Virus record (IMG/VR): IMGVR_UViG_3300023257_000007 | Coordinates: 186,001 to 250,000 of that record | Direction: 5' to 3' (one strand) | DNA: 64,000 bases | Part shown: piece by piece, positions 28,404 to 63,335 of the stretch | Numbering within the stretch: position 1 is the first letter of the stretch | Layout of the letters: each line of letters starts with the position of its first letter | The notes under the pieces: model-generated | The model's input: the letters and a program-made list of their open reading frames with translations, nothing else | Told to the model about the DNA's origin: nothing | Databases searched by the model: none | Program-made: the position numbers and the translations under genes

Positions 28404-28796
28404 ATGAAAAATTTTTTAAATTTTATAAATAATAATCACGAATATTCAAATAATGAAATGAATAAAATTATTAAATTCATTGGCAAATTATGTAAATATG
28501 AAAACAAAAAAGCAAACGCAATATTCAATTTTAACATATCAAAAAATATACTTAATGATACAGATTTTAATGCATCAGTAAGATCAAATAACATATATTC
28601 AAACGATATAAAACAAGTTACAAAAATACTTGATAAAGTATGCGAAAAATTAAATATGTATCCAACAATAAATATTATGATTAATACATTTGGTAGATCA
28701 ACAAATTATAATATTAACTGTACATTTGAATTTACAGAAAAAAATAAATTAGACATTCTTGCAACTATAGAAGGAAATAAATTAGGACTATTATAA
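28404..28796 (+). CDS. KMGLL-tag family protein
   Basis: Ends IEGNKLGLL. Confidence 0.8.
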   Translation: MKNFLNFINNNHEYSNNEMNKIIKFIGKLCKYENKKANAIFNFNISKNILNDTDFNASVRSNNIYSNDIKQVTKILDKVCEKLNMYPTINIMINTFGRSTNYNINCTFEFTEKNKLDILATIEGNKLGLL

Positions 28797-29141
28797 ATGA
28801 AACATCTTAAAAAATATAACGAAGAGAAAATAGAAAATAAATGGAAAAATACAATAGTAATTTATGAATCTTACTCGGATTCATGGGTATATGTAGATGG
28901 TTCATTGATATCAGAATGGTCTGTTACCATATTTGATATATTATTAATATTATCAGAGGATAATGTTAATATATTGAAATATAAAATATCAATGTTAACA
29001 GATCATTTTCCTCAAAATATAATTGATCATTTAAACGATCACCCAGAACAAGAATTTCCAATGTATGATTTAGATATATATGAACAAGAAATAATAAAAA
29101 GAAAAGCAGAAAAAGAAGGACAAAAAATGGGTCTGTTTTAA
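28797..29141 (+). CDS. Dual-motif protein (MKHLKKYNE ... EGQKMGLF)
   Basis: Both terminal motifs present. Confidence 0.8.
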   Translation: MKHLKKYNEEKIENKWKNTIVIYESYSDSWVYVDGSLISEWSVTIFDILLILSEDNVNILKYKISMLTDHFPQNIIDHLNDHPEQEFPMYDLDIYEQEIIKRKAEKEGQKMGLF

Positions 29142-29142
29142 A

Positions 29143-29466
29143 ATGAAACATATTTCAACATATAACGAATACTTACAAACACCCTTAAATTTATCAATAC
29201 CAATATAGAAGATAATGATAAATTTACAAATTACCTAGAACAATCAAACCTAATATCAAAAAATTCTTTATTTAGAACATATCATAAAGGATGTATATAT
29301 CATACATTTTTAATATCAATTATAGATAATCATTCTTAAAAATTAGTTGTTCAAACCCAGATAATGTATCTGGGTTTGAACAAAAAGGAGTAAATGAAAT
29401 ATTATTTGATCCAGATATAATTATATAATTATAAGATTAGAAGCAAATAAAATGGGATTATTATGA
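29143..29466 (+). pseudogene. Broken dual-motif gene (MKHISTYNE ... LEANKMGLL)
   Basis: N- and C-motifs in different frames with stops between; contains a perfect 17-bp inverted repeat. Confidence 0.7.
29347..29383. repeat. Perfect 17-bp inverted repeat with 3-nt loop
   Basis: TTGTTCAAACCCAGATA-ATG-TATCTGGGTTTGAACAA. Confidence 0.95.
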
Positions 29467-29744
29467 AATATTTAAAGACATACAACGAATCAAAATATAA
29501 ACCATCATATACTGCACGCCCAATGCCAGATAAATATCGGCTTAGATGTGAATATTTAATAGATAAATACGGTAAACTAAATACAAATAATAAAATTACA
29601 CATTTATCAGAAGAATCAGAAATTTTACAAATAGATATAAATGATGATTATAGATTAGATATTTTTAAAACTACTGATAAATCGTTACTTAATATGAGAG
29701 AATTAGAAATGAAATTACAAGCAAAAGAATTAGGATTGTTATAG
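29463..29744 (+). CDS. Dual-motif protein (MKYLKTYNE ... QAKELGLL)
   Basis: Both terminal motifs present. Confidence 0.8.
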   Translation: MKYLKTYNESKYKPSYTARPMPDKYRLRCEYLIDKYGKLNTNNKITHLSEESEILQIDINDDYRLDIFKTTDKSLLNMRELEMKLQAKELGLL

Positions 29745-29806
29745 ATTTAATGAAAAGGGGAATTTATATTATAATATATTTAATGTATCATAATTTAGCA
29801 CCTTTT

Positions 29807-30192
29807 TTATAATAATCCCATTTGATTTGCCTGTTTAACATTATCGAGTGATATACCAACATTTTTTTCTAACCAATTTTCAATTGTAATATAATTGTAT
29901 TTTTTATAATCAGGATCTTGTAAATTATTTTGTAAATATACCATACTACCCCCAATTAAAATCATAATCTTTAACATTAAATATTTCATAATTTTCTTGA
30001 GAAATAGATATCAGAAAATAACTAGGTCTACCACCAGAATAACGAAAAATATAATCATAATCTATATCAATATTATAAAAATCATCATATAATGAAAATA
30101 ATACAAAATTAATACATAATATATGTATACATAATATTAAAACAGATGATATAAAATTATTAGAAAAAATATGTTGTTTTAAGGTATTTTAT
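29807..30192 (-). pseudogene. Broken dual-motif gene ((M>I)KYLKT ... ANQMGLL)
   Basis: ATA AAA TAC CTT AAA ACA overlaps upstream stop; frameshifts near the start and at a G5 run (~29950); the track ORF 29807..29989 is only the 3' frame. Confidence 0.6.
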
Positions 30193-30575
30193 AACAATCC
30201 CATTTTTTTCGCAGTTAATATTTTTTCTATTTCAGAACCTAATAAAAATGCATTTAATTTTATGAGTATAGAATTATCTAAATCATCATATTGTACATTT
30301 CTTTCATATTCACTATCTGATAAATTATAATAATAAATAATACCGGTTGTATTAATATTACTTTGATAAATGTCAAATTTTAAATCATCTAATTTTATTT
30401 TTATTAAATTAGTAGATGTAGATCTACCATAAAGATCAGATATTCTATTATTACCATCATTATTTTTTTCACCGTATTTATCTAGTAAATATAAACACCT
30501 ATTAAATACTTTATCAGGCATTAAATAACAATGATTTCTATTAATTTTTTCTAAATATGATTTCAAATATCTCAT
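30189..30575 (-). CDS. Dual-motif protein (MRYLKSYLE ... TAKKMGLL)
   Basis: Both motifs; YLLDKYG..N shared with 29463..29744. Confidence 0.8.
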   Translation of the reverse strand: MRYLKSYLEKINRNHCYLMPDKVFNRCLYLLDKYGEKNNDGNNRISDLYGRSTSTNLIKIKLDDLKFDIYQSNINTTGIIYYYNLSDSEYERNVQYDDLDNSILIKLNAFLLGSEIEKILTAKKMGLL

Positions 30576-30616
30576 TAATCTTATATATTAAATTTAAATA
30601 AGAATATATAAATAAT

Positions 30617-30919
30617 ATGAAATACCTTAAAACATATAATGAAAATAAATCATTTAATGATAAAGTTAATATGATTAAAAAAATAGTAGACACCGTTGGT
30701 AAAACTGATGATAGAGGTAAAATTTTAAATTTAAACTATAAATCAAAAGGTTCTAAAACCTATCTTTTAAAAATTCAAGATACATGCTGGATAAGTATTG
30801 AGATGATAGGTACAAGATTTTTAAGAAATTTAGATTCTAGAGTAATTGAATCTATATATAAAGAATTAAAAGAAAAATACCCAGAGTTTTTTATGGGAGA
30901 TAAATTAGGTATTTTATAA
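30617..30919 (+). CDS. Dual-motif protein (MKYLKTYNE ... MGDKLGIL)
   Basis: Both motifs; AATATATA at 30603. Confidence 0.8.
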   Translation: MKYLKTYNENKSFNDKVNMIKKIVDTVGKTDDRGKILNLNYKSKGSKTYLLKIQDTCWISIEMIGTRFLRNLDSRVIESIYKELKEKYPEFFMGDKLGIL

Positions 30920-31420
30920 AATAAAAGTCTTAAAAAATTTTCCAAAAAAATTTTCCAAAAAAATTTTAGAAACAAAATCCCAGTTTCTAAGTTATACTTT
31001 GTAACGGATACCCAAACGTAATTATATTATATATTATATTATATACACTTTTTAAATTTACACTTTCTGACAAATACTTAATATCTACTACAAAACAGTT
31101 ACTAATTTAAATGAACACTACTTACTCTATAAAAACAAACTTACTATTCTGTGATATAAAAAGTACTCTATTTACTATAAAATAGTTAATACCTTATATA
31201 GATAATACTTTATTTTAAAATAAACTTCTTTATATTATTTAAAATAAACTTCTTCATGACCTCATATATTCACTATATCTATATATGTAGATAGGTGGCC
31301 CGTGAGCTATTTTTACTTATTATTATTAATCTTAAATTAGGAGGATTTTTATAATCCTTATCTATTATTATTTTTTTGTCATGGATCATTGTGACATCTT
31401 TTTTTATTTTTATATTAAGG
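30920..31420. other. AT-rich intergenic region at GC-skew switch (candidate replication origin)
   Basis: No credible ORF; AAAAAATTTTCC x2-3 and TTAAAATAAACTTCTT x2 repeats; + strand C-rich before and G/T-rich after. Confidence 0.45.
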
Positions 31421-31440
31421 TTGCTTTCCTTATCTTTGTA

Positions 31441-32013
31441 ATGAATAAAAATTATAATGAGATGGAAAATTATTTTAAAATTGAACATGGAAGAAAGGTT
31501 GAGACATACACACCTAAAGATACATATGTATTAACATGGAATGAAAGACATGGTGATGCTGATCAAAGTATGCCTACATCTATGACTATACACAGTATGG
31601 ATGAGTTATGGTTCATGTTATGGTTTAGTAAGTGGTTAGATAGATACAGACAGTATAGTGACTTAGATGAGTATAGTAAGGTACTTAATAAGTATAGTAA
31701 GGAGTTATTGGGTAGTAGTTGGTATATAACTGATTGGTGTAGTGATGTGTATGATCATGATTGTATATATTCTAGTTGTTATTGTGGTGTGGATGCCATG
31801 AAGTTATATTATTATGATGAGCATGGTGTTAAGTATGAAGAGGAGATTGATGGTAGTACATATATATCTTTAGTGAAGATGGGATATAAGTTAGATTGTT
31901 GGTTCATTGATAAGTATCCACATATAGCTAATGAGTTACAGGGTATGATATGTGATGCTGCATTGGAAGATAAGAAGGATGTTATTGAGGCTAATAAAAT
32001 GGGGTTGATATGA
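31441..32013 (+). CDS. KMGLL-tag protein, GDAD/YYYD family
   Basis: Likely start 31441 after TATCTTTG promoter; ends IEANKMGLI. Confidence 0.8.
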   Translation: MNKNYNEMENYFKIEHGRKVETYTPKDTYVLTWNERHGDADQSMPTSMTIHSMDELWFMLWFSKWLDRYRQYSDLDEYSKVLNKYSKELLGSSWYITDWCSDVYDHDCIYSSCYCGVDAMKLYYYDEHGVKYEEEIDGSTYISLVKMGYKLDCWFIDKYPHIANELQGMICDAALEDKKDVIEANKMGLI

Positions 32014-32342
32014 TAGATAAGAATATAGTTATAGTATCGTATAGTAAAGAGGAGTTTAATTATGTATTGAATCTATTTAAATCTAGGGAGTTCAGTAGGT
32101 CTACGATTGATTCGTATCTACGTTACGTTAATGATGATGGTCATTATAATGATTATGTATATCCTATTGCATTAATTGTGAGGTTTAAATTAATGTCAGC
32201 AACGTGGCAGTATAAAGATATGTGGGATCATATTAATGATTTATTAGATAGGGGTGAGGTTGATAGTGTTATTGATTGTAAAGATTTCAAAGAGATGGGT
32301 GGTGATAATTATATTGAAGGTATTAAATTAGGTTTACTTTAA
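32010..32342 (+). CDS. KMGLL-tag family protein
   Basis: Ends IEGIKLGLL. Confidence 0.8.
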   Translation: MIDKNIVIVSYSKEEFNYVLNLFKSREFSRSTIDSYLRYVNDDGHYNDYVYPIALIVRFKLMSATWQYKDMWDHINDLLDRGEVDSVIDCKDFKEMGGDNYIEGIKLGLL

Positions 32343-32371
32343 AGTTTAGAAGGTATTCCTTATCTTTGTAT
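32341..32371 (+). promoter_or_regulatory. 31-bp repeated sigma-A promoter unit AAAGTTTAGAAGGTATTCC[GT]T[AG]TCTTTGTAT, copy 1
   Basis: Near-identical copies at 34574, 35324, 39812; contains the TAnnTTTG -7 element. Confidence 0.85.
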
Positions 32372-32414
32372 TGAATATAATTTAAAGAATAGAAAATGAT
32401 AAAAGGAATAAGTA

Positions 32415-32732
32415 ATGACATATAAGGTATTGATTAAGGTTCGTAATGAATCTGAATGGATATCATGTTGTGATATGTTGTATAGTCATGGTTATCGATG
32501 GCAAGACAATTGTATGGACTCAAAGAAGATACATGGATATAAGTTGATAAGTGAAGGTGATATATATTTAGTTATATATAATCATACTGACCCTCATCAT
32601 CATGATGATCGTTTATTTTATAATACTAATGTTAATGTTGATATTTATGGGCCGGATGTTATTATAATTAATTATGTTGAAGGTATGGATTTACATGAGA
32701 TAATAGAAGTTAATAAATTGGGATTAATATGA
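32415..32732 (+). CDS. KMGLL-tag protein, subfamily A
   Basis: IKVRNESEWISCC.MLYSHGY.W; ends IEVNKLGLI. Confidence 0.8.
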   Translation: MTYKVLIKVRNESEWISCCDMLYSHGYRWQDNCMDSKKIHGYKLISEGDIYLVIYNHTDPHHHDDRLFYNTNVNVDIYGPDVIIINYVEGMDLHEIIEVNKLGLI

Positions 32733-33064
32733 TAGTATTTAGTAAAGATATAAAGAAAATAAATATTAAGGTTCGTAATGAATCTGAATGGGTATCATGT
32801 TGCAATATGTTGTATAGTCATGGTTATCATTGGAATGTTGAGTCTGATTTTATGGAGATATATTCTGAATGTTTAGAAACTGCTAAGGAATATATTAAGA
32901 CTTATGCAATAAATGATGGTATATATTTAGTTGTTTATAATGATAATAGTGGACGGTTATATTATAATTATAAATATAAGACTGATGGTATAATAAATCT
33001 TGATTGGTATGATGGTATGGATTTACATGAGATAAATGAAGCTAATAAATTGGGGTTAATATGA
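32729..33064 (+). CDS. KMGLL-tag protein, subfamily A
   Basis: Close tandem paralog of 32415; ends NEANKLGLI. Confidence 0.8.
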   Translation: MIVFSKDIKKINIKVRNESEWVSCCNMLYSHGYHWNVESDFMEIYSECLETAKEYIKTYAINDGIYLVVYNDNSGRLYYNYKYKTDGIINLDWYDGMDLHEINEANKLGLI

Positions 33065-33366
33065 AAGAGAAGATATACATAATATTAAATAATATAGATG
33101 ATTGGATTAATTGTTGTAATCAATTAGACAATGAGGGATATTTTTGGGCAAGAAGTAGTGACTCATATAAAGATAAATATCATAAATGTAAAACTTTCGG
33201 TAATCCTGAAAATTATATAGTAATAGGTCATAATGAGTATGATGATAATCGTTTATATTATGGTAATATATATAATGATAAGAAGTTTGATGGTATTATT
33301 TTATATTGGGATGCTGATGTAGATTTAGAAAGTTATTTTGCAGGTTTAAAAATGGGATTATTATAA
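33061..33366 (+). CDS. KMGLL-tag protein, subfamily A (distant)
   Basis: W..CC..L...GYFW; ends FAGLKMGLL. Confidence 0.8.
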   Translation: MKEKIYIILNNIDDWINCCNQLDNEGYFWARSSDSYKDKYHKCKTFGNPENYIVIGHNEYDDNRLYYGNIYNDKKFDGIILYWDADVDLESYFAGLKMGLL

Positions 33367-33476
33367 TAATATTTTCATGTTTGACCAGGGAGAATTTAGG
33401 TTGGAGGAAAGGGGATATTTTTATTTGGTGAAGGTTTGTTGTGTATTTGTGTATAAATTAAAATGTAAAAAAGATT

Positions 33477-33857
33477 ATGATAAAATGGATTAATATAAGG
33501 CTGGAAGGTTATGGTAAAGGTAAAGGTAAAGGTAAAGGTAAGAAGAAACTGAATAAGATGGTTATGCGTAAATTGTTACATCAAATTGATTGTAAGGTTG
33601 GTTTTCGTATTAAGGATGGTGGATGGAAACCAGTTTTAAATAGTTTAAAAGAATATAAGCATTATAAATATATATGGATTGCTATATGTCCTTTTGGTAA
33701 AGATATGGCTGCGGATTATCATGAAAATAAAGAAGAATGGGAGAGTTATAAAGACGGTATTGAGGCGGATGAAGCTGAGGTATGGTTGAGTTGGGAAGAG
33801 TTTATGGATTTAGATATTCAGATGATTGTTAATGGTTCTAAAATGAATTTATTATGA
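33477..33857 (+). CDS. KMGLL-tag protein with (GK)5 microsatellite
   Basis: (GGTAAA)4 at 33513-33536; ends VNGSKMNLL. Confidence 0.75.
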   Translation: MIKWINIRLEGYGKGKGKGKGKKKLNKMVMRKLLHQIDCKVGFRIKDGGWKPVLNSLKEYKHYKYIWIAICPFGKDMAADYHENKEEWESYKDGIEADEAEVWLSWEEFMDLDIQMIVNGSKMNLL

Positions 33858-34246
33858 AAGATATAAAGTGGATAAATATAATGTTAGACTGGGATAAGTT
33901 TAAGTGGGAACAATTCCATGATGTTGTTGATTATTATAAAGAGTTATTTCCTAAATTAGATTGGACAACTGTTCAAACTGAGATACAGATACATGATAAA
34001 ATTCGAAATGAATCTGTTTTTGATATTTTAGGTTTATCTATATGTTTGGAACATGATAGTAATGATTTTAATATTAATAATTGTGAAAATACTATAAATA
34101 ATTGGCATCCTGTTATATTTAAGTATGGTATTGGTGATGATTTATATGACAAGCAAACTGGTATTGAAATAATTGTTAAATATAGTAAAGATTTCCGTGA
34201 AGAGATTGAGTTTTATTTAGAGGGTTCTAAAATGGGTTTATTATGA
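33854..34246 (+). CDS. KMGLL-tag protein, subfamily E
   Basis: WINI..DWD.F.W similar to 60161; ends LEGSKMGLL. Confidence 0.8.
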   Translation: MKDIKWINIMLDWDKFKWEQFHDVVDYYKELFPKLDWTTVQTEIQIHDKIRNESVFDILGLSICLEHDSNDFNINNCENTINNWHPVIFKYGIGDDLYDKQTGIEIIVKYSKDFREEIEFYLEGSKMGLL

Positions 34247-34575
34247 AAAAAACAATAATATTTTTACATAACAATAAGGATTTGGGCAACTTGTTCATGT
34301 ATTTACATGTTATTGGATGCAAATGGTCTAGTGGTAGACCTATTATAATAGATAGTGAAATACAAAGATTTAATTTATCTTGTTCTAGATCTAAATCTGT
34401 TGCAATTATCGTTGATGATGGTAGTCTTACTTATGTATCAAATAAGAAAGATATTGTTTATAGTTATATATCTGGTGATAAATTTAAATATTATGATCAT
34501 TATGAGTATGTAGATTTTGATAAGGAGTTTGATATTGATGTAACTATTAATGGTAATAAGATGGGATTACTTTAA
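34243..34575 (+). CDS. KMGLL-tag protein, subfamily B
   Basis: YLH.IG.KW, YDHYEY; ends INGNKMGLL. Confidence 0.8.
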   Translation: MKKTIIFLHNNKDLGNLFMYLHVIGCKWSSGRPIIIDSEIQRFNLSCSRSKSVAIIVDDGSLTYVSNKKDIVYSYISGDKFKYYDHYEYVDFDKEFDIDVTINGNKMGLL

Positions 34576-34604
34576 AGTTTAGAAGGTATTCCGTGTCTTT
34601 GTAT
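34574..34604 (+). promoter_or_regulatory. 31-bp repeated promoter unit, copy 2
   Basis: Overlaps the stop of the tagged gene; SD AGGAGG downstream. Confidence 0.8.
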
Positions 34605-34627
34605 TATAATTAAAGGAGGAAACAAAA

Positions 34628-34963
34628 ATGAAAATGATAATATATGCACATAATGACGAAGATATTTATAAGTTATCAACTTATTTACATTATATTGGAA
34701 TTAAATGGCAAACTGAAATTTTTATTATGAATGATGGTGAAATGACAATAGATTGTAATAGAGCTGAATCTAAATCTATTGCATTTTGTGTTAAAAATAA
34801 TCGTGTGTCATATATGAATGATGGTGGTTCTTTTGGTGGTGATGTTTATAATTTTTTCAAAAGGCAACCATATGAATGTTATGACCATTATGAGTATATT
34901 GAATTTGATAAGGAGTTTGGTGTTGATATGGTTTTAGAATCAATAAAGATGGGTTTATTATGA
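34628..34963 (+). CDS. KMGLL-tag protein, subfamily B
   Basis: Ends LESIKMGLL. Confidence 0.8.
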   Translation: MKMIIYAHNDEDIYKLSTYLHYIGIKWQTEIFIMNDGEMTIDCNRAESKSIAFCVKNNRVSYMNDGGSFGGDVYNFFKRQPYECYDHYEYIEFDKEFGVDMVLESIKMGLL

Positions 34964-35325
34964 AAAAAACAATAATATATGTACATAGTGATGAGGATAT
35001 GATTAATTTATTAAGTTATTTACATTTTGTTGGAGTTACATGGCATGGCTCTGCTATTATAAAAGATGATGATAGTTCCGATAATTTTTTTAATGCCGAT
35101 GCCAGATATATAGATATTAGTTGTAAAAAAACGGGAACTGTTGGATTTTGTATTGATCAAGATGATTATATTACATATATGGATGATGGTACTTTTAAAG
35201 GCGAGAATGTTTATGAATATTTCGGTAGAGATTTTATGGAGTATGATCATTATGAGTATGATGAATATGTTGAAAAGTTTGATATTGAACCACTCATAAA
35301 TGGAATAAAGATGGGTTTACTTTAA
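34960..35325 (+). CDS. KMGLL-tag protein, subfamily B
   Basis: Ends INGIKMGLL. Confidence 0.8.
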   Translation: MKKTIIYVHSDEDMINLLSYLHFVGVTWHGSAIIKDDDSSDNFFNADARYIDISCKKTGTVGFCIDQDDYITYMDDGTFKGENVYEYFGRDFMEYDHYEYDEYVEKFDIEPLINGIKMGLL

Positions 35326-35354
35326 AGTTTAGAAGGTATTCCGTATCTTTGTAT
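35324..35354 (+). promoter_or_regulatory. 31-bp repeated promoter unit, copy 3
   Basis: Overlaps the stop of the tagged gene. Confidence 0.85.
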
Positions 35355-35377
35355 TATAATTAAAAAGGAGAAGAAAA

Positions 35378-35632
35378 ATGAAAAAGAAACAAAATAAAAA
35401 AGAAGAGAGTAAATATCAATACAGAAGTGATACTGCTGTTAGGGTTGAAGAAACTGAATATAGTGTAAATGAGTATGACGAATGGGATCGCATAGTATTT
35501 TATTTATGGAAGAAGAGTGGTTATTGGTCTGTGAATGTTTTTGCTCCTGTAACTGATGGTAAAAGGGTTTCATTAGAACCTTTACAAGTAATTCATAAGT
35601 ATTGGACATCTTATAATAAATTATCAATATGA
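35378..35632 (+). CDS. Hypothetical protein
   Basis: 84 aa with promoter and AAGGAG upstream. Confidence 0.75.
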   Translation: MKKKQNKKEESKYQYRSDTAVRVEETEYSVNEYDEWDRIVFYLWKKSGYWSVNVFAPVTDGKRVSLEPLQVIHKYWTSYNKLSI

Positions 35633-35895
35633 AAAGATTAAATATATTTGTAAGAAGTGGATTACAGCAAACGTTGTTTCTACATTATTTATATACTAAT
35701 GGTTATAGTTATAAAGATAGAAAGGATCTTTATTGGAAATTTACTAATGGTTCAGGTGCTATTGTGGTTAATGTAATTGATAAAATAATATTAGGTGGTA
35801 ACACAGGTTGGTTTGCAACACAATCACATATGAATGTAAAAGAATTTGTTGATAAGGCGTGGGAATTTGAAAGTATGAGGATTGGTGTATTATGA
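35629..35895 (+). CDS. KMGLL-tag variant protein
   Basis: YLYTNGYSY; ends FESMRIGVL. Confidence 0.75.
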   Translation: MKRLNIFVRSGLQQTLFLHYLYTNGYSYKDRKDLYWKFTNGSGAIVVNVIDKIILGGNTGWFATQSHMNVKEFVDKAWEFESMRIGVL

Positions 35896-36131
35896 TTAAG
35901 GAATATCATATATGTATTATAAATAAAAAGGAGAAAAAAATGCTAACAATATTAACAATATTATTAATATGGAATCAATTTAGTGGTTGGTTTAGAAAGA
36001 TGTTTTGTAAAATTGGTTTACACACATGGATTAAAGTCTATTCACATAATGAAAAAGGTTGGCATATAAAGGAAAAGAAATGTAGAATATGTAATAAGGA
36101 GGTAAAAAATGATAAAAATAATAGAAAATAA
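35892..36131 (+). CDS. Small membrane / Cys-His protein
   Basis: FCKIGLHTW...KCRICNK pattern. Confidence 0.65.
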   Translation: MIKEYHICIINKKEKKMLTILTILLIWNQFSGWFRKMFCKIGLHTWIKVYSHNEKGWHIKEKKCRICNKEVKNDKNNRK

Positions 36132-36618: not shown

Positions 36619-36692
36619 AACATTAAAATGGTAAGGAATTTCAGAAGGAGTTCCTTATCTTTGTATTAATATTAATTTAAAGAAGAAATAAA

Positions 36693-57345: not shown

Positions 57346-57511
57346 ATGAAAAAAACAAGTAAAATGAGGATTGCAATAAAAATAAAATCACCTAAAAAGT
57401 TACATGAAGTATGGTCAGAAATGGATGGTAAGATATCCTAATGATAGAGAAACCATTATTGTAGATTTGGATAACAATGATTTAGATTCTAATAAATTAG
57501 GATTATTATAA
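57346..57511 (+). pseudogene. Internally deleted subfamily F tag gene
   Basis: MRIAIKIKS..KL..VW in one frame, LDSNKLGLL in another. Confidence 0.6.
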
Positions 57512-57792
57512 TGTTGTATTATATAAAAGTAAAGGAAGATATGGATATCAGTCGAATAACCGATGTTGTTCCATGGTATAATAATGAGGGTTTAACTTTT
57601 GTAAAATTTGTTAATTGTTATTGTATTGGTTTTTATGATTATTATAATTATTTTGATAATAATGTATCTAGAAAATTATTTTGGTATTCGTATTTTCATA
57701 TGAAAAATGTAATAATTGAGAGAAAGAAAAAGTGTAAAGACATTGATGAATTTTTAAGTTATTACGAAGGATGTAAAATGGGATTGCTGTAA
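57511..57792 (+). CDS. KMGLL-tag protein, subfamily G
   Basis: YYIKVKE, CKDIDEF; ends YEGCKMGLL. Confidence 0.8.
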   Translation: MLYYIKVKEDMDISRITDVVPWYNNEGLTFVKFVNCYCIGFYDYYNYFDNNVSRKLFWYSYFHMKNVIIERKKKCKDIDEFLSYYEGCKMGLL

Positions 57793-57850: not shown

Positions 57851-58183
57851 ATGAAATATGCGATAGAAATAAATAATATATCAGAGGGTGCGAAATTATT
57901 TGATATTATAGATATAGATTTGGGAAGAATAAAAGGTTTTATAGGTGATAGATATTCTTCAGATAAGGAGATATGGATAGATTTTTTAAAGTTAAGGATT
58001 AATCATTATAATCATTTTAATTCTGTAATAGTTTGTTTTTATGAAGGATTAATTTTTGAAAAGTATATTTATGGTGGTCATATATTTCACAATGTATTGG
58101 GTGATAATTATATAGAATTAAATTGTAATGATATGGATTATATTAAATTATTTTTTGAAGCTAATAAAATGGGATTGTTATGA
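57851..58183 (+). CDS. KMGLL-tag family protein
   Basis: Ends FEANKMGLL. Confidence 0.8.
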   Translation: MKYAIEINNISEGAKLFDIIDIDLGRIKGFIGDRYSSDKEIWIDFLKLRINHYNHFNSVIVCFYEGLIFEKYIYGGHIFHNVLGDNYIELNCNDMDYIKLFFEANKMGLL

Positions 58184-58399
58184 TTATGAAAGAAAGTATT
58201 GAGTATGATTTTAAATTTGCTATAAAGGTGGATGATAAGTTATTAATTAAATTAGTGGTAAATCATTTATATATTTTGGGTTATAAGTGGTATGGGGGTG
58301 GTGATAGGGATGATATATTAGAGGTATGTATTAAATCTAATTATGATGTCATCCTGAATTAATGGAGGATTATGTTAGTATTAAAATGGGATTATTATG
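58180..58399 (+). pseudogene. Internally deleted subfamily C tag gene
   Basis: 5' half paralogous to 58397; jumps out of frame into ~50 nt matching the 3' end of 58693..58992. Confidence 0.75.
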
Positions 58400-58696
58400 A
58401 AAAAGTTTGAAAACACACAATTTAAATTTGCTATAAAGGTGAGTGGTATAGGATTAACTGAGTTAGTGGTAAATCATTTATATTCTTTGGGTTATGAGTG
58501 GTGTGGTGGTGATAAGTGTGAGGTAATAAATGAATGTGCAAAAAATAATGAACATGGAATTGGTGTTGAACATGGTAGGATAAGTTATAATGTTTATGAA
58601 TGGGATTGTGATAAGTGGTATGATATTGATGAATATGTTGAAAAATATGATGAATTAATGGAAGAATATATTAGTATTAAAATGGGATTATTATGA
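58397..58696 (+). CDS. KMGLL-tag protein, subfamily C
   Basis: Ends YISIKMGLL. Confidence 0.85.
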   Translation: MKKFENTQFKFAIKVSGIGLTELVVNHLYSLGYEWCGGDKCEVINECAKNNEHGIGVEHGRISYNVYEWDCDKWYDIDEYVEKYDELMEEYISIKMGLL

Positions 58697-58992
58697 AAGT
58701 TAAAAAGTGTGATTATAAATTTGCTGTAGAGGTAAGTGGTGTATTATTAACTGAGTTATTAGTAGAACATTTATATTCTTTGGGTTATGAATGGTTTAGT
58801 GGTAAGAAAATGAATATAAATGCTCTATGTGAAAGAACAGAATCAAATAAAATTGGTATTGATTATAATGGTAAGATAAGTTATAATGTTCACGAAGAGA
58901 TATGTGATGAGTGGTATGATATTGATGAATATATTGAATGTCATCCTGAATTAATGGAGGATTATGTTAGTATTAAAATGGGATTATTATAA
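58693..58992 (+). CDS. KMGLL-tag protein, subfamily C
   Basis: Ends YVSIKMGLL. Confidence 0.85.
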   Translation: MKVKKCDYKFAVEVSGVLLTELLVEHLYSLGYEWFSGKKMNINALCERTESNKIGIDYNGKISYNVHEEICDEWYDIDEYIECHPELMEDYVSIKMGLL

Positions 58993-59400: not shown

Positions 59401-59717
59401 GTGGAGGAATTCCACGAACCTATCCAGGAATTAATTACGTTAGAATTATTGAAAATTTATATAAATGTGATTTAAGTAATATAAAGAAGATATGCATTAA
59501 ATTAAATGATAGTAATATGCATGAAGTTATGAATTATTTAGGTTATTCAGCTAACATGTGTTATTATAATTATGGTTATGTGATATATTATATTGGTTTT
59601 GGTGTGTATAGATTTTGTGAAAATAATAGGTTTACTGAATTAATAAATGATTGTGAAGAATGTAATTTTGAAGAGTTTAAATTTAGTATAGAGTCAAATA
59701 AGATGGGATTGTTATAA
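59401..59717 (+). pseudogene. Subfamily G tag gene with a frameshifted 5' end
   Basis: Restoring 4 nt (AATT, as in the 57794 copy) joins GTG GAG GAA to the 59517..59717 frame ending IESNKMGLL. Confidence 0.55.
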
Positions 59718-59838: not shown

Positions 59839-60102
59839 ATGAAAAAATATTATATAAAATTAGACTATAATAGAGATGAAATTTTTGATTATTGTATGCC
59901 TTATTTCAAGGAGGATATTATTAGTGATATTAAGATTAAAAATGATTTATTTGTATATTTAATATATTATACTCATACTGCGAATTACAATTTTTATACA
60001 AGTTTTTCTAATAAATTATTATTAGGAAGGGATTATATAATGTGTGATAATCTTGAAGAGTTTAAATTTAGTATAGAATCTAGTAGAATGGGATTGATAT
60101 AG
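59839..60102 (+). CDS. KMGLL-tag protein, subfamily G
   Basis: CDNLEEFKFSIESSRMGLI, near-identical end to 59717. Confidence 0.8.
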   Translation: MKKYYIKLDYNRDEIFDYCMPYFKEDIISDIKIKNDLFVYLIYYTHTANYNFYTSFSNKLLLGRDYIMCDNLEEFKFSIESSRMGLI

Positions 60103-60160: not shown

Positions 60161-60541
60161 ATGAAATTACAATGGATAAATATATTTATAAAGTATGATG
60201 ATTTTACTTGGAAGATTTATGATGAAGTTGAGTTTTATTTTAAATCTAAATATCCTGGTATTAAATGTGTAGGTAAAAAAGAATTAAAATATGCATTAAA
60301 AGATAGATTAGAAGAAAATCATTATTTTCTAGATATTTTTGCTTTTTGTGTAGAATTTTATCCTAAAAGAGATAGATTTACAGTATATACACCAATTGGA
60401 AAAAATTTTGCTGATTATGGTTTATGTTATAATAAATATACTGAAAGTGTTACTTATTATGAATTAACTGTTGATTATGGTGAAAATTTTAAAGAAGAAA
60501 TTGAAATGTTATTAACATCAATGAATATGGGGGTTCTTTAA
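60161..60541 (+). CDS. KMGLL-tag protein, subfamily E
   Basis: Ends LTSMNMGVL. Confidence 0.8.
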   Translation: MKLQWINIFIKYDDFTWKIYDEVEFYFKSKYPGIKCVGKKELKYALKDRLEENHYFLDIFAFCVEFYPKRDRFTVYTPIGKNFADYGLCYNKYTESVTYYELTVDYGENFKEEIEMLLTSMNMGVL

Positions 60542-60912
60542 TGAAAAAATGGTTAAACATAAAAATTGACATAAATGGTGATATCATGGGCCAAATGGTT
60601 AAGATGATAAATAAAATGAAAAATTTTTATAGTCCAACTTTATCATTTGATAAACATTTAGAAGAATTGTCAGAATCTATAAAAACTATAAAAGAAAACA
60701 GAAGTTTAAAAGATGATAATTTATTTATAAGTTTCTTTTTAGAAAATAATAAGGACTTGAATTTACATGAATCAAGTTTAATGGTTGTAGATTTATGGAG
60801 TGATGATAGATGGAGGGATATCACAAATGAGATATGGATTGAGGATACTAATGTTTTTTTGGAATATGGTTTAGATGCATTATTAGATAGTATAAATATG
60901 GGGTTACTTTAG
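60541..60912 (+). CDS. KMGLL-tag family protein
   Basis: Ends LDSINMGLL. Confidence 0.8.
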   Translation: MKKWLNIKIDINGDIMGQMVKMINKMKNFYSPTLSFDKHLEELSESIKTIKENRSLKDDNLFISFFLENNKDLNLHESSLMVVDLWSDDRWRDITNEIWIEDTNVFLEYGLDALLDSINMGLL

Positions 60913-60914: not shown

Positions 60915-61240
60915 ATGGAATTAGATTATATAAATATACTTATAAAGTATGATGATTTTACTTGGGAGATTTATGATGAAGTGGAGTCTTATTTTTTATC
61001 GAAATACCCTGATTTAAAATTAGAAGTATTTTTGCTTTTTGTTTAGAAATTCGCCCTGATAATATTAGGAATGTATTTAGAATATACACACCACAAACAA
61101 TAAATTATGCTAAACATGGTTTAAGTTGCAATTCTTATAATGAAGATATTACTTATTATGAATTAACTGTTGATTATGGTGAAAATTTTAAAGAAGAAAT
61201 TGAAATGTTATTAATATCAATGAAATTAGGTTTATTATAA
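60915..61240 (+). pseudogene. Deleted and frameshifted duplicate of 60161..60541
   Basis: KYDDFTW.IYDEVE start and YYELTVDYGENFKEEIEMLL.SM.LGLL end match; middle segment missing. Confidence 0.8.
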
Positions 61241-61351: not shown

Positions 61352-61534
61352 ATGAATAAGTATTGTTACATAGAAAGAAATAACATTGGAGTAATTCAGA
61401 AATATACTAAACCAAGTTGGTTTAGAAAGACTTTCTTTAATGACGGATATGAATGGAGAGACTTTTGTTTATGTACCGATAAAGAATGGACGAAAGACTT
61501 TTACGAAAGATCATATAAAGATATTAAAATTTAA
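61352..61534 (+). CDS. Hypothetical protein
   Basis: 60-aa ORF. Confidence 0.6.
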   Translation: MNKYCYIERNNIGVIQKYTKPSWFRKTFFNDGYEWRDFCLCTDKEWTKDFYERSYKDIKI

Positions 61535-61642
61535 AAATCATCGAATCTATTATTGAGCCTGAAAAAATGAATCTTTTATAATAGATTGTCTAAGAATTTG
61601 TTGTAACAAATAATTAAAAAAAATGAAAATAATAAAAAAAAT

Positions 61643-61966
61643 ATGAATTATAGAAAATTTGTGCAAGAACGAATTGGTATTTTTATAGTCTTTACACAAG
61701 AAGATTATAATGAAGTTGTTAAAATCTTTGAATCTATTGGATTAACATTTAATCCATTTTCTAACTTATCATTTAATAGAGTATTTTGTATTACTTTACA
61801 AATAAATCCATGGGGTGGTAACAGAGTTTTCAGGGATTCTTATTCATATAGATCATATTATGAAAGAGAAAAAGAATATTCCAAATTTTGGGATGTAGAT
61901 AAATTAAGAGAAGAGAGTAAAGATTTACCAATAAAATATGAAGCAAGAAAGATGGGTTTATTATAA
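61643..61966 (+). CDS. KMGLL-tag family protein
   Basis: Ends YEARKMGLL. Confidence 0.8.
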   Translation: MNYRKFVQERIGIFIVFTQEDYNEVVKIFESIGLTFNPFSNLSFNRVFCITLQINPWGGNRVFRDSYSYRSYYEREKEYSKFWDVDKLREESKDLPIKYEARKMGLL

Positions 61967-62305
61967 TAGACCCATTTTGTTTCCTGTGTGATATATTTTG
62001 AATTCTTTATTATAATCAGCATATTCTTCTAGGCTTTCAAATACTGTAAAAAATGTATTAGAAGAATAATTAAATGCGATGAGGGTTTTATTATAACCAA
62101 TATAATATTCATTGTAACTATAATTGTTAATGCAATGTTCTAATATTTCTTTGTGATGGGCTTCATCTTCATTGGGTTCATCCCAGTATTTATTCAATTG
62201 ACTTCTCCAATAATTAATAAGGCTTGTTACTTCTTCCGGAGTTTTGCAGTTAACTAGGACTTTATCTGATTGTATATTTTCTAAATATGTACTAAGGTAT
62301 TTCAT
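61961..62305 (-). CDS. Dual-motif protein (MKYLSTYLE ... HTGNKMGLL)
   Basis: AATATATA upstream at 62313-20; lone reversed gene in the early region. Confidence 0.8.
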   Translation of the reverse strand: MKYLSTYLENIQSDKVLVNCKTPEEVTSLINYWRSQLNKYWDEPNEDEAHHKEILEHCINNYSYNEYYIGYNKTLIAFNYSSNTFFTVFESLEEYADYNKEFKIYHTGNKMGLL

Positions 62306-62356
62306 ATGAAGATATATATTGAATTTGTTTTTTCAAAATAAATTTTGTATTTTATA

Positions 62357-62641
62357 TTTATGAAATTTTATTATTTAGAAGTAAAAGAAAAGGATTGGAA
62401 TGAAGTTATAAACTATATAACTAAAGTTATTCCTATTTGGAATGAAAAGTTTGATATAAGTCTTCCTATTAAACATATTGGATTTTATATAGATCTAAAG
62501 AATGAATTTGGTTTAAATAATGATAATTTATTATTGTTTCGTTATCATAAATTAAATTTTAAAACTTGTGATTATATAAAGTGTAAGGATATAGAAGAAT
62601 TCTTATTTTCTTATGAATCAAGTAAGATGGGATTATTGTAA
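62357..62641 (+). CDS. KMGLL-tag protein, subfamily G
   Basis: YYLEVKE, CKDIEEF; ends YESSKMGLL. Confidence 0.8.
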   Translation, partial: FMKFYYLEVKEKDWNEVINYITKVIPIWNEKFDISLPIKHIGFYIDLKNEFGLNNDNLLLFRYHKLNFKTCDYIKCKDIEEFLFSYESSKMGLL

Positions 62642-62662
62642 CATTATTAAATAAAACAAAGA

Positions 62663-62986
62663 ATGAACATAGCTATCGAGTTATATACTAAGAAAGAGTT
62701 ATTTAAGGCATGGAAAAAGATGTTAGATTTAGGATATAATTTAGATGTTTGGCATAGAATTTACATGGAGAAGGATTATAATTGGATTGGATTTGATTAT
62801 ATAAAAAAAAGGGGTGGTCTTTATATTTATTTTGATTTAGATGAATATATAATGACTGGTTGGGATGGTTTATATAATATACACATGATTAAATATATTC
62901 CTGATGATATGGATTTTATTATCAATCATATTGATATTGATTCGATTGATTCGTGTATAGAGGGTATTAAATTAGGTTTATTATAG
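62663..62986 (+). CDS. KMGLL-tag protein, subfamily F
   Basis: Ends IEGIKLGLL. Confidence 0.8.
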   Translation: MNIAIELYTKKELFKAWKKMLDLGYNLDVWHRIYMEKDYNWIGFDYIKKRGGLYIYFDLDEYIMTGWDGLYNIHMIKYIPDDMDFIINHIDIDSIDSCIEGIKLGLL

Positions 62987-62999
62987 ATTTGAAATTATG

Positions 63000-63036
63000 A
63001 GATTTTATAGGATCTACTAAAATGGGATTAATGTAA
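63000..63036 (+). pseudogene. Orphan tag stub (DFIGSTKMGLM*)
   Basis: Only the 3' tag-coding end remains between two tagged genes. Confidence 0.5.
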
Positions 63037-63335
63037 TGAATGAACTTGTATATATTAGTGTAAATAATAAGGAACAATATGATAGAGTTATACGTATTGC
63101 TGAAAATAATGGTTTTAAAACAAGAGGTAATTCCTCTTCTTTACCTGTTAATATTTATCTTTGTATTAAGGATGCTGTTGAAGGATCTTGGTTAAAGGAT
63201 GTTATTTATTTTAGTAGTAATGATTATGATCTATATAAAACTGTATTACCAGTTAGGATAAAATGTGATTATGAGGATTTTTCAGAAGAATATTTAAAGT
63301 TTATAACAGAATCAGATAAGATGGGATTATTATAA
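63036..63335 (+). CDS. KMGLL-tag family protein
   Basis: Ends TESDKMGLL. Confidence 0.8.
   Translation: MNELVYISVNNKEQYDRVIRIAENNGFKTRGNSSSLPVNIYLCIKDAVEGSWLKDVIYFSSNDYDLYKTVLPVRIKCDYEDFSEEYLKFITESDKMGLL

Follow-up and report, generated by a model that had tools for sequence, protein, structure and literature searches.

A shared nine-residue C-terminal tail on at least 84 small proteins of a huge bacteriophage of Bacteroidota

The closest described system is that of the internal proteins of T-even phages, a diverse, arms-race set of proteins sharing only a short terminal capsid-targeting peptide (CTS), which is N-terminal in T4 (PMC3012670, PMC9026906). In that phage, the protease gp21 cuts after Glu, as first seen at a Glu-Ala bond, while Alt and gp21 are also processed at the C-terminus (PMC3012670, PMC9026906). 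Other short terminal peptides serve for docking or for turnover, such as the clamp-binding C-termini of T4 gp43, gp33 and gp55 or of E. coli Pol II and Pol IV, and the ssrA tag. Here, a window of 64,000 nucleotides (positions 186,001 to 250,000 of the IMG/VR record IMGVR_UViG_3300023257_000007) was analysed, in which many small ORFs end, directly before the stop, in the pattern hydrophobic-E-[ASG]-x-K-[ML]-G-L-[LI]. The window is part of a 348-kb T4-like huge phage of Bacteroidota related to Mahaphages. About half of that genome was sampled, and at least 84 tagged genes were found in it. Moreover, a second, very different phage has the same tag, and the 462-kb phage LR756500 has a charge-swapped version of it (NADDFG[FL][FLI]).

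To begin with, a strict pattern ([KR][ML][GN][LI][LIF] directly before a stop) matched 36 stop-to-stop segments, 35 of which were located beyond position 28,000, while only 17 internal matches were found in all six frames, just one of them in a long real ORF. A 10-residue position matrix then gave 44 terminal matches at 6 bits or more, against 4 among 58,647 internal positions, where 0.25 terminal matches are expected at the internal rate. Of those 44, 36 were intact ORFs of 60-210 aa and 8 were short relics (20585-20668, 29410-29466, 49645-49827, 57386-57511, 58347-58400, 61013-61240, 61528-61581 and 63001-63036), whereas 37 and 8 had been counted in the preliminary description. The existence of the tagged set, as first described from the sequence alone, was therefore confirmed, with two corrections: one relic (20585-20668) lies outside the range of 28404-63335 originally given, and the array continues past the end of the window. 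The tagged ORFs made up 36 of the 77 ORFs of 60 aa or more called between 28.4 and 63.7 kb, and they appeared on both strands. The features are given below with their matrix scores, where family A denotes the bodies of the phrog_17589 type, most of them assigned with a body-only HMM (marked HMM).

28404..63335 (no strand): region of tandem arrays of tagged small genes, with 36 intact tagged ORFs and 7 relics, continuing beyond the window end
28404..28796 (+): tagged ORF, 130 aa, ending IEGNKLGLL, orphan body (singleton), 26.0
28797..29141 (+): tagged ORF, 114 aa, EGQKMGLF, N-terminal motif MKHLKKYNE, 23.5
29807..29989 (-): tagged ORF, 60 aa, QANQMGLL, 11.0
30189..30575 (-): tagged ORF, 128 aa, TAKKMGLL, N-terminal motif MRYLKSY, 22.3
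30617..30919 (+): tagged ORF, 100 aa, MGDKLGIL, N-terminal motif MKYLKTYNEN, 16.8
31381..32013 (+): tagged ORF, 210 aa, IEANKMGLI, body related to the untagged 36109-36618 (BLASTP 3e-4), 26.2
32010..32342 (+): tagged ORF, 110 aa, IEGIKLGLL, 26.0
32415..32732 (+): tagged ORF, 105 aa, family A (HMM), 19.9
32729..33064 (+): tagged ORF, 111 aa, family A (HMM), 20.9
33061..33366 (+): tagged ORF, 101 aa, family A (HMM), 25.2
33477..33857 (+): tagged ORF, 126 aa, NGSKMNLL, 18.4
33854..34246 (+): tagged ORF, 130 aa, LEGSKMGLL, paralogue of 60161-60541, 28.5
34243..34575 (+): tagged ORF, 110 aa, family A (HMM), 26.0
34628..34963 (+): tagged ORF, 111 aa, family A (HMM), 26.2
34960..35325 (+): tagged ORF, 121 aa, family A (HMM), 25.0
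35629..35895 (+): tagged ORF, 88 aa, family A (HMM), degenerate tail ESMRIGVL, 7.3
36893..37222 (+): tagged ORF, 109 aa, family A (HMM), 27.8
38247..38567 (+): tagged ORF, 106 aa, family A (HMM), NAKQLGLI, 7.6
38598..38903 (+): tagged ORF, 101 aa, family A (HMM), ESFKLGLF, 19.4
41366..41689 (+): tagged ORF, 107 aa, family A (distant; HMM), 25.9
50346..50672 (+): tagged ORF, 108 aa, ESNKFNLI, paralogue of 62663-62986, 12.0
51066..51380 (+): tagged ORF, 104 aa, DAGKLNLI, 12.9
52330..52962 (+): tagged ORF, 210 aa, IEAANLGLL, body related to the untagged 36109-36618 (BLASTP 5e-4), 10.6
57511..57792 (+): tagged ORF, 93 aa, paralogue of 62360-62641, 29.5
57851..58183 (+): tagged ORF, 110 aa, 28.8
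58397..58696 (+): tagged ORF, 99 aa, family A, the protein modelled (AF2 pLDDT 87.9, predicted helix 85-95 followed by a 4-residue coil), 23.1
58693..58992 (+): tagged ORF, 99 aa, family A, 22.7
59517..59717 (+): tagged ORF, 66 aa from the first ATG (108 codons stop to stop), 27.8
59839..60102 (+): tagged ORF, 87 aa, ESSRMGLI, 20.9
60161..60541 (+): tagged ORF, 126 aa, degenerate TSMNMGVL, 8.2
60541..60912 (+): tagged ORF, 123 aa, DSINMGLL, 15.5
61643..61966 (+): tagged ORF, 107 aa, EARKMGLL, 25.5
61961..62305 (-): tagged ORF, 114 aa, TGNKMGLL, N-terminal motif MKYLSTY, 26.2
62360..62641 (+): tagged ORF, 93 aa, 26.8
62663..62986 (+): tagged ORF, 107 aa, 25.7
63036..63335 (+): tagged ORF, 99 aa, 24.5
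29463..29744 (+): ORF, 93 aa, with the N-terminal motif and a decayed tail QAKELGLL, body paralogue of 30189-30575
36109..36618 (+): untagged relative (169 aa) of the bodies of 31381 and 52330
20585..20668 (+): relic or mini-ORF, 27 codons, ending EALKMNLL, upstream of the RNase H gene, 22.5
29410..29466 (+): relic, 18 codons, EANKMGLL, 23.8
49645..49827 (+): relic or short ORF, 60 codons, EGQKLGLL, 25.6
57386..57511 (+): relic, 41 codons, DSNKLGLL, 20.8
58180..58400 (+): frameshifted family A pseudogene, with a 60-aa N-terminal piece plus a 17-codon tag piece identical to the end of 58693-58992
61013..61240 (+): relic, 75 codons, truncated copy of the 60161 type, 18.8
61528..61581 (+): relic, 17 codons, EPEKMNLL, 11.4
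63001..63036 (+): relic, 11 codons, STKMGLM, 7.7
31427..53883 (+): 26 copies of one promoter-like motif (..GAAnnnnnTCCGTAT[AC]TTTGTAT) in front of tagged genes, tRNA genes, RNA ligase and HU-like genes (28 matches against 1.6 expected)

Conservation of the 3' ends at the nucleotide rather than the amino-acid level had been named beforehand as an outcome that would count against the tag, and the codons were compared accordingly. Synonymous variation was observed throughout (Ser by both TCN and AGY at -7, GGA/GGT/GGG, TTA/TTG/CTA/CTT, and M or L at -4), and pairs sharing an amino acid shared the codon no more often than codon usage predicts at every tag position, so selection acts on the protein. 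As a control, 120 chance matches of the same DNA pattern in cellular genomes were all single; only 8 of the 79 that were scored lay in ORFs of 60 codons or more, and none of the 40 best-scoring carried E-[AGS] at -8/-7. Among 78 tags, the information was concentrated at positions -9 to -1, with E at -8 in 44 and A/S/G at -7 in 73 of them, and conservation far exceeded that of any body residue.

Full-length homology of all members, which would have reduced the set to simple paralogy, had likewise been proposed as a refuting condition, and it was not found. In particular, the tag was carried by a phrog_17589-type alpha/beta domain (family A), by LPxx-type leucine-rich repeats recognised by Pfam (LRR_4, 2e-21 to 3.5e-36), by a phrog_8562-like body and by about 30 orphans, with one of the tagged bodies also existing untagged. 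The pair with and without the tag given in the preliminary description (31381 and 52330 against 36109) held only weakly (BLASTP 3e-4 to 5e-4), as the untagged copy lacks a 55-70-residue C-terminal extension and not just the tag. On the other hand, relatives of the generic phrog_17589 domain lacked the tail, and the family A body domain recurred as repeats in giant proteins, one of which has an ART-PolyVal domain. The tagged proteins were small (median 113 aa), soluble and mostly acidic (median pI 5.25), with 1 of 110 having a membrane-like segment. Moreover, many members shared an N-terminal MKYLKTYNE motif, which co-occurred with the tag (odds ratio 7). Two AF2 models showed a short helix followed by a four-residue coil, where confidence fell to 75 at the LRR tail (91-98 for the body), while the last block of the family A model had a pLDDT of 91. 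Furthermore, turnover was fast, as relics were common and one strain carried an extra gene cassette.

The T4-like nature of the phage was supported by a baseplate wedge, gp32, UvsX, UvsW and a DnaB-type helicase, together with a T4-type large terminase in the relative. In the relative LR756500, the otherwise invariant Lys at -5 is Asp in the homologous tag, which often carries two extra residues (..FGFFDN). Two of its LRR carriers lie beside the large terminase and tail sheath genes, although the gene block also holds topoisomerase II genes, so its context is mixed.

The initial interpretation was supported only in part: selection at the protein level, the strictly terminal position and the modularity held, and LRR bodies fit the idea of variable binders, while no partner was identified, no effector activity is shown and the idea of a clamp motif is weakened. 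What the analysis shows is a self-contained C-terminal module, with an acidic N-cap, a short helix of about 9 residues and a four-residue hydrophobic tail, kept by protein-level selection on unrelated bodies whose genes sit in fast-turning-over tandem arrays. That it is an address label read by one shared receptor is inferred, as is the probable phage origin of this receptor, because of the Lys-to-Asp change in LR756500. The mechanism favoured here, itself an inference and held tentatively, is that of a capsid (prohead-core) targeting signal and propeptide. In this view, tagged proteins would dock on the scaffolding core during head assembly, many would then be trimmed by the prohead protease at the conserved Glu / small-residue bond at -8/-7, and they would stay in the head to be injected with the DNA, after which the variable bodies (LRR and other binders) would neutralise host defence or take-over targets; the N-terminal motif on a subset may be a second such signal. 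The strict terminal position, the information concentrated at -9 to -1, the free synonymous sites, the unrelated bodies, the predicted helix and coil, the small and soluble proteins, the fast turnover, the T4-like phage with its T4 precedent, and the charge swap and gene context in LR756500 are in favour of this reading, as is the ART-PolyVal link, since such polyvalent proteins are proposed to be injected (Iyer et al. 2017). However, no virion proteomics exists, so packaging is not shown. Moreover, many tagged genes follow the 26 promoter copies, whose core matches the Bacteroidota primary-sigma -7 box and which also precede tRNA, RNA ligase and HU-like genes, which looks early or middle rather than late. 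The site is not a clean L/I-X-E site either, as Glu at -8 is present in only 56% of tags and the residue three before the cut is Leu or Ile in only about 30%.

Among the alternatives, the nearest, although doubtful, is a cytoplasmic docking motif plugging many binder domains (LRR and others) into one host or phage hub, such as an AAA+ protease or its ClpP pockets, RNA polymerase or the ribosome, so that the tagged proteins would act as adaptors bringing host targets, including defence proteins, to it, as a phage analogue of the F-box or poxvirus ankyrin/PRANC families. The modular tag on recognised protein-binding scaffolds, the very large family evolving by gene birth and death as adaptor families in arms races do, the early-looking, host-sigma-like promoter context and the small acidic proteins, typical of early take-over proteins, agree with it. 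In addition, the [ML]-G-L core resembles the [ILV]-G-[FL] loops by which AAA+ unfoldases dock on ClpP, which is a lead and not a test, and by helical geometry the conserved E, small residue and M are inferred to fall on the face opposite the loosely conserved hydrophobic stripe. In contrast, no hub was identified, the swap at -5 is unexpected for a pocket on a highly conserved host machine, the limited scan of cellular genomes gave no sign that cellular proteins use the same extended motif, and about 100 proteins would compete for one site. A purely structural element, that is, a C-terminal capping helix stabilising each small domain or letting the proteins oligomerise, for example by pairing with the N-terminal motif, without any external receptor, is unlikely. 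The pLDDT of 91 in the family A model means that the tail may pack on its own domain, a small residue at -7, G at -3 and L at -2 fit a Schellman-type helix C-cap (an inference), and the N-terminal motif co-occurs with the tag; yet the same nine residues are kept on an LRR solenoid, an alpha/beta domain and other bodies without a common packing surface, relatives of the generic phrog_17589 domain lack the tail, and the tag is far better conserved than any body residue.

A built-in degron, in which a hydrophobic C-terminus with a free carboxylate is read by a host protease such as ClpXP so as to limit protein lifetime or to saturate the protease, is similarly unlikely. The strictly terminal, non-polar tail and its independence of the body fit this option, and ssrA is a two-part precedent of similar length, but there is no similarity to its ..ALAA end, the free end is not fixed in LR756500, and loss of a degron should be only mildly harmful, yet the tag is the best-conserved part of more than 100 proteins and of two to three divergent phages. 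Even less likely is a tail binding the host beta clamp or the phage gp45-type clamp, despite being terminal, hydrophobic and loosely like Q-L-x-L-F, with Q in place of K in some members (QMGLL, QLGLI), in a T4-like phage (T4 gp33 is a small acidic protein with such a tail). The C-terminal piece of the RB69-type polymerase of LR756500 (PDB match 1e-8) ends in ..NLIYSSSLF, unlike the local tag, none of the replication proteins found on the window's own genome (gp32, UvsX, UvsW, the DnaB-type helicase, topoisomerase II and RNR) carries the tag, and about 100 clients for one clamp pocket is implausible. Finally, nucleotide-level conservation (a recombination site, a ribosome-binding site for the next gene, or gene conversion) is effectively refuted by the codon comparisons and by the tag occurring at operon ends and on both strands, even though many stops overlap the next ATG (ATGA) and Gly at -3 prefers GGA (17 of 31, against about 20% elsewhere).

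The claim of the preliminary description that nothing similar had been described needs qualifying in view of the T-even internal proteins, although peptide tagging on this scale is not described for phages. With respect to these proteins, and against the favoured reading, at least 84 tagged genes is far more than any known set of packaged proteins, and the tagged proteins are acidic, whereas the T4 internal proteins are basic. Overall, if the favoured reading is right, the tag would be the C-terminal counterpart of the T4 internal-protein CTS, which is the closest known system, although its peptide is N-terminal and its gene number is far smaller.

To begin with, the window was found to have a G+C content of 25%, and the strict pattern [KR][ML][GN][LI][LIF] immediately before a stop matched 36 stop-to-stop segments, 35 of them beyond position 28,000. 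In contrast, the same pattern occurred internally only 17 times in all six frames, almost all of these in AT-rich noise frames and one in a long real ORF. A 10-residue position matrix built from the strict set gave 44 terminal matches at 6 bits or more, against 4 among 58,647 internal positions, while 0.25 terminal matches would be expected at the internal rate. Of those 44, 36 were intact ORFs (60-210 aa) and eight were short relics, which is close to the 37 and eight of the preliminary description, although one relic (20585-20668) lay outside the range given there and the array ran on past the end of the window. Moreover, tagged ORFs accounted for 36 of the 77 ORFs of 60 aa or more between 28.4 and 63.7 kb, three of them on the minus strand. 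The observation first made from the sequence alone is therefore real, and it is larger than initially described.

Whether the 3′ ends are conserved as nucleotides rather than as amino acids had been named beforehand as a point that would count against the tag, and the codons were examined for this purpose. The small residue at -7 was encoded by GGA, GGT, GCA, GCT, GCG, TCA, TCT and AGT, position -4 alternated between ATG and four Leu codons, and the Gly and Leu codons varied. For every tag position, pairs of genes with the same amino acid used the same codon about as often as predicted by the codon usage of their own bodies (for example, 0.51 observed vs. 0.51 expected at -2, and 0.44 vs. 0.63 at -3). 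The only oddity was a preference for GGA at -3, where Gly used this codon in 17 of 31 cases, although GGT makes up 66-77% of the Gly codons elsewhere in the same genes and genome; this preference is unexplained. Thus, selection acts on the protein and not on the DNA, which rules out a recombination site, a ribosome-binding site or recent gene conversion as the cause.

In a set of 78 non-redundant tags, the information was concentrated in the last nine residues, which comprised a hydrophobic residue (-9), E (-8; 44 of 78), A/S/G (-7; 73 of 78), any residue, K (-5; 60 of 78), M/L, G (66 of 78), L (73 of 78) and L/I, while a weaker acidic-then-hydrophobic pair appeared at -14/-13. Two AlphaFold2 models with different bodies were both predicted to end in a short helix stopping at the Lys and followed by a four-residue coil. 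In particular, the model of a protein of family A, the largest group of related bodies, had a mean pLDDT of 87.9, with the helix at 85-95 and a pLDDT of 91 in the last block, while that of a leucine-rich repeat (LRR) protein had a mean pLDDT of 91.1, with the helix at 128-135 and a pLDDT of 75 in the last block compared to 91-98 for the solenoid. By helical geometry, it is inferred, without the use of model coordinates, that the conserved E, the small residue and M lie on the face opposite the loosely conserved hydrophobic stripe (-13, -10 and -9).

Full-length homology of all members, that is, simple paralogy, had likewise been set out in advance as a finding that would refute the proposal, and it was not observed. 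With the last 12 residues removed, a phmmer comparison grouped the tagged proteins of the window into one cluster of eight, one of three, a few pairs and about 15 singletons, while iterative body-only profiles over 65 tagged proteins gathered at most 29 into one superfamily and left about 30 families or singletons. Family A has a strand-helix start with an L..LGY.W signature and is a phrog_17589-type domain of unknown function: two window members matched this profile directly (best 8e-5), and proteins found with the family A profile matched it at 1e-10 to 1e-28. That profile recovered 92 proteins among 1.84 billion representatives, including single-domain tagged proteins from other metagenomic phages as well as long proteins with 3-8 tandem copies of the domain and no tag, one of them with an ART-PolyVal domain; the generic domain therefore exists without the tail. 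On the other hand, searches of Pfam, PHROGs and PDB sequences, and of PDB structures with Foldseek, gave nothing informative for family A, BFVD gave only weak matches to uncharacterised phage proteins, a word-index protein search returned only the query's own cluster, and a metagenome scan with a family A alignment found only the same genome and one strain variant.

At least nine tagged proteins of the two phages bearing the KMGLL-type tag (the window genome and IMGVR_UViG_3300022890_000011) were LRR proteins above the Pfam thresholds, with repeats of the LTELPELPEGL type and the tail variant ..NPDLYNANKMGLY. Two proteins shown in full scored 67.8 and 76 bits against a cut-off of 27 bits, and five more matched LRR_4 in a scan of 61 proteins (best E-value 3.5e-36). 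Furthermore, one tagged protein gave a weak ankyrin hit. A third body was shared, with weak similarity, by 31381-32013 and 52330-52962 and by the untagged 36109-36618, which ends where the C-terminal extension of the other two begins. The LRR_4 solenoids and the phrog_17589 alpha/beta domain are different predicted folds, and the tag is thus modular, as the preliminary description had proposed.

A second shared motif was found at the N-terminus, where 40 ORFs with different bodies began with MK[YH][LI]K[TK]Y[NE]E (window positions 28797, 29463, 30575(-), 30617 and 62305(-), and the further genome loci L001, L108, L237, L308, L038, L093 and others). Of those, 28 also carried the C-terminal tag (odds ratio 7, p = 3e-8) and several more carried a decayed tag, although it should be noted that the background set includes spurious ORFs, so that the odds ratio may be inflated. 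The motif showed synonymous variation, occurred also on RNase H (20684-21289) and a few larger untagged proteins, and was the majority N-terminus of the tagged proteins outside the window. In the LRR model, it formed a low-confidence N-terminal helix.

The window lies at about 186-250 kb of the 348,222-bp contig IMGVR_UViG_3300023257_000007, of which a near-identical 344-kb contig also exists; no link could be made with a huge phage described from Ace Lake (PMC7416419). Further chunks of this genome carried more tagged genes at 250-255, 255-270, 273-278, 281-292, 311-312 and 333-348 kb, with isolated ones in the replication region. A total of 84 non-redundant tagged genes were found in roughly half of the genome, and 110 over all loci, with a median length of 113 aa and a median pI of 5.25. 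Only 1 of the 110 proteins had a membrane-like segment, so that a membrane anchor or secretion signal was rejected. Moreover, a strain variant (Ga0307992_1011008, locus L110) carried an 845-bp insertion (679-1523 of that locus, against window ~35913-35916) holding one extra tagged family A gene with its promoter, the flanks being otherwise 99.4-99.9% identical, which together with the relics shows fast gene turnover. The phage is T4-like, with a baseplate wedge, RNA ligase, RNase H, gp32, UvsX, UvsW, a DnaB-type helicase and topoisomerase II. Its baseplate protein was 45% identical to that of the 735-kb Mahaphage LR756501, while more distant matches were Lak (Prevotella) phages at about 25% and, further down the list, Tenacibaculum, Chryseobacterium and Flavobacterium phages, which points to a Bacteroidota host.

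Other features were detected within and around the arrays of the window, as follows.

31427-53883, + strand: 26 copies of a promoter-like motif of roughly 35 nt, TTTTTAnnTnaGAAnnnnnTCCGTAT[AC]TTTGTAT, preceding tagged genes, tRNA genes, RNA ligase and HU-like genes.
38929-38990, 43635-43695, 49514-49570, 51428-51490 and 53884-53945: five copies of a conserved element of roughly 60 nt directly downstream of that promoter, with the core GAAGAGTAGACTCCAAyTTGCG.
Upstream of 5322(-), 8698, 19286(-), 20559(-), 20684, 28367(-), 28404, 30575(-), 30617 and 62305(-): the motif A[AT]TATATA at a fixed distance (13-16 or about 30 nt) before the ATG of operon-first genes.
37855-38169, 45725-46159 and 51802-52110: three paralogous genes of HU-family DNA-binding proteins, interspersed with the arrays.
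42250-51050: nine tRNA genes (Lys, Glu, Tyr, Pro, Phe, Arg, Gln, Met and Leu) among the tagged arrays, next to a T4-type RNA ligase gene (48205-49188).

For the promoter-like motif, the 11-nt core with one mismatch gave 28 matches against 1.6 expected, and the core TAT[AC]TTTG matches the Bacteroidota -7 box TAnnTTTG. The 60-nt element showed a weak hairpin with apparent covariation and no Rfam match, and it may be a small RNA family. The operon-first genes preceded by A[AT]TATATA were structural and some tagged genes in the window, plus RNase H, and also replication genes at the loci read in the walk along the genome; its use as a marker of late genes was thus dropped, and it may be a second promoter class or a leader element.

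The tag was subsequently sought in other phages. A 166-kb contig (IMGVR_UViG_3300022890_000011) shared almost no protein similarity with the window phage apart from an LRR-tag protein (68% identity), and it nevertheless carried the same tag on at least 14 proteins. In the complete 462-kb huge phage LR756500, 15 proteins ended in ..[LI]-x-N-A-D-D-F-G-[FL]-[FLI], often followed by DN. The 14-residue architecture was the same (D/E at -14, I/L at -13, a small residue at -7 and Gly at -3), while Lys -5 was replaced by Asp and M/L by Phe. Three of the four carriers tested were LRR proteins, two of them scoring 90-110 bits on LRR_4/LRR_8 and a third (216 aa) matching solved LRR proteins at 7e-79. In contrast, a 42-kb region of LR756501 (LR756501.1 555379-597220) had no such tags and held instead 12 copies of DPYGEE.W, seven of them 4-6 residues before a stop, on proteins of 92-477 aa, which may be another shared terminal tag. 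Mimicry of a host protein tail was also considered, but the matches of the DNA pattern listed in cellular genomes (at least 120, from a scan limited in extent) were all single chance matches. Finally, the literature search found no paper holding KMGLL or DPYGEE in a phage context and none on a conserved C-terminal motif of small proteins in jumbo phages, and nothing in Pfam, PHROGs or PDB describes this tag.

Regarding the partner of the tag, about 50 kb to the left of the window was read in search of the polymerase, clamp, prohead protease and capsid genes of the window's genome. Topoisomerase II, UvsW, gp32, UvsX, a DnaB-type helicase, RNR and a baseplate hub were found in this walk along the genome, but not the genes sought. 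Two very large ORFs with no Pfam hit (1825 and 1116 aa; 13366-18843 and 10001-13351 of locus L235) lay between helicase genes and could be divergent RNA polymerase-like subunits, although they were not examined. The clamp idea, already put forward in the preliminary description, was tested in LR756500, whose RB69-type DNA polymerase is split into at least three ORFs (LR756500.1 248786-263915), with an intein remnant and interposed ORFs between them; these ORFs end in GTGN[YL]KFEW, recur elsewhere in that genome and are probably homing-endonuclease-like elements. The C-terminal piece of this polymerase matched PDB polymerases at 1e-8, followed the intein remnant and ended in ..NLIYSSSLF, not in the local tag NADDFG[FL][FLI]. 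Moreover, no replication protein reached on the window's genome was tagged, and clamp binding is therefore disfavoured. The consensus core K-[ML]-G-L-[LI] had Q at its first position in only 3 of 78 tags, a comparison with Q-L-[SD]-L-F that speaks clearly neither for nor against a clamp motif, and binding to the clamp pocket was not modelled.

Taken together, the analysis itself demonstrates a tag that is modular at the protein level and conserved, with informative variation, in at least three huge-phage lineages, whereas its receptor and function are matters of inference. The interpretation first offered, of variable binding domains joined to one shared partner, is supported only in part. A terminal address tag read by one shared receptor is considered likely, and the Lys/Asp swap between lineages argues for a co-evolving, hence probably phage-encoded, receptor, which is again an inference. 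Within this general reading, capsid targeting is tentatively preferred. The conserved Glu/small-residue pair just upstream of the most conserved block fits the analogy with the T4 internal proteins, and so do the strict terminal position, the small soluble bodies, the T4-like phage and the link of the family A domain to polyvalent (presumably injected) proteins. However, the promoter class looks early or middle, the proteins are acidic, the number of genes is very high, Glu is present at -8 in only 56% of the tags, and the gene context in LR756500 is mixed, as terminase and sheath genes appear there together with topoisomerase II subunits, so that a placement of its tagged LRR genes in a morphogenesis cluster had to be softened. 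The main alternative, held to be somewhat less probable and itself doubtful, is a cytoplasmic docking motif coupling binder domains to a hub such as a protease. In its most novel form, which is unlikely but not excluded, about 100 phage-encoded binder proteins (LRR, phrog_17589 domains and orphans) would each capture a different host protein and hand it to one common machine, for example an AAA+ protease or ClpP, as a categorically new adaptor system equivalent to the F-box/PRANC substrate-adaptor principle, which has no described counterpart in bacterial viruses. A degron, a purely structural cap or an oligomerisation element remain possible.

If the tag is an address label, one peptide of 9-15 residues would define a whole functional class making up roughly a fifth of the genes of a huge phage, which are otherwise 'hypothetical proteins'. 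It would give a simple sequence rule for finding the deliverable or hub-directed proteins of the phage, a handle for pulling out the receptor, and a possible tool for loading foreign proteins into capsids or onto a host hub in Bacteroidota. Terminal targeting peptides on diverse phage proteins are already known, and the present case would extend the T4 capsid-targeting principle to a C-terminal signal and to a much larger, LRR-containing repertoire or, if the receptor is a host machine, would instead reveal a new adaptor logic in phage take-over. Furthermore, the charge-swapped version in LR756500 and the different recurrent motif in LR756501 suggest that terminal peptide tagging may be a general, overlooked feature of huge phages.

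Among the systems described to date, the closest is the capsid-targeting sequence (CTS) of the T-even phage internal proteins (IPI, IPII, IPIII and the polymorphic ip loci). Both are sets of small, highly diverse, fast-evolving proteins of a T4-like phage sharing only a short terminal peptide, and in T4 these proteins serve the arms race with host defence (PMC3012670, PMC9026906). The T4 propeptides target the proteins to the prohead core and are removed by the gp21 protease, which cuts after Glu at a Glu/small-residue bond next to the peptide, first seen at a Glu-Ala bond, while Alt and gp21 are also processed at the C-terminus (PMC9026906). However, the T4 peptide is N-terminal, 10-19 residues long and unrelated in sequence, whereas the tag is C-terminal and the role of the N-terminal MKYLKTYNE motif on a subset was not established; T4 has a handful of such genes per genome and not 84 or more, and its proteins are basic. 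With respect to an L/I-X-E cleavage site, L or I was found three residues before the would-be cut in only 23 of 78 tags, despite the frequent E at -8 and the small residue at -7, which leaves the matter undecided; packaging, cleavage and injection were not assayed, the phage being uncultured and without a proteome. Pfam and PHROG scans of 33, 10 and 61 tagged proteins gave no internal-protein family, the only structural label being one weak hit (E = 0.0013) to phrog_5782, 'virion structural protein'.

The C-terminal clamp-binding tails of T4 gp43, gp33 and gp55 and of E. coli Pol II and Pol IV are also short hydrophobic peptides at the extreme C-terminus that dock different proteins on one hub, but the tag is absent from the LR756500 polymerase and from any replication protein found here, and the numbers are far larger. 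The ssrA tag and the SspB XB tail, ClpXP degron and adaptor-docking peptides, are likewise terminal peptides of about 5-11 residues read by one machine whatever the body is. There is no sequence similarity to them, and the tag is genome-encoded on each gene; its last residues are non-polar but unlike LAA, which alone does not decide for or against a degron, as proteolysis was not measured. The poxvirus ankyrin/PRANC and cellular F-box families are likewise large paralogue families of repeat-protein binders with a short C-terminal docking element, the pattern expected if the LRR members are adaptors, although those are eukaryotic ubiquitin-ligase systems and no F-box or PRANC domain was detected by Pfam in 94 scanned tagged proteins. 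The encapsulin cargo-loading peptides are also C-terminal peptides of about 10 residues containing Gly and Leu, and they dock cargo on the inside of an HK97-fold shell, but their consensus differs, the system is cellular and there are few cargoes per shell. Finally, the family A body domain (phrog_17589) occurs as repeats in the giant multi-domain polyvalent proteins of phages and conjugative elements, where the modules are fused into one chain, while here each module is a separate gene with a tag.
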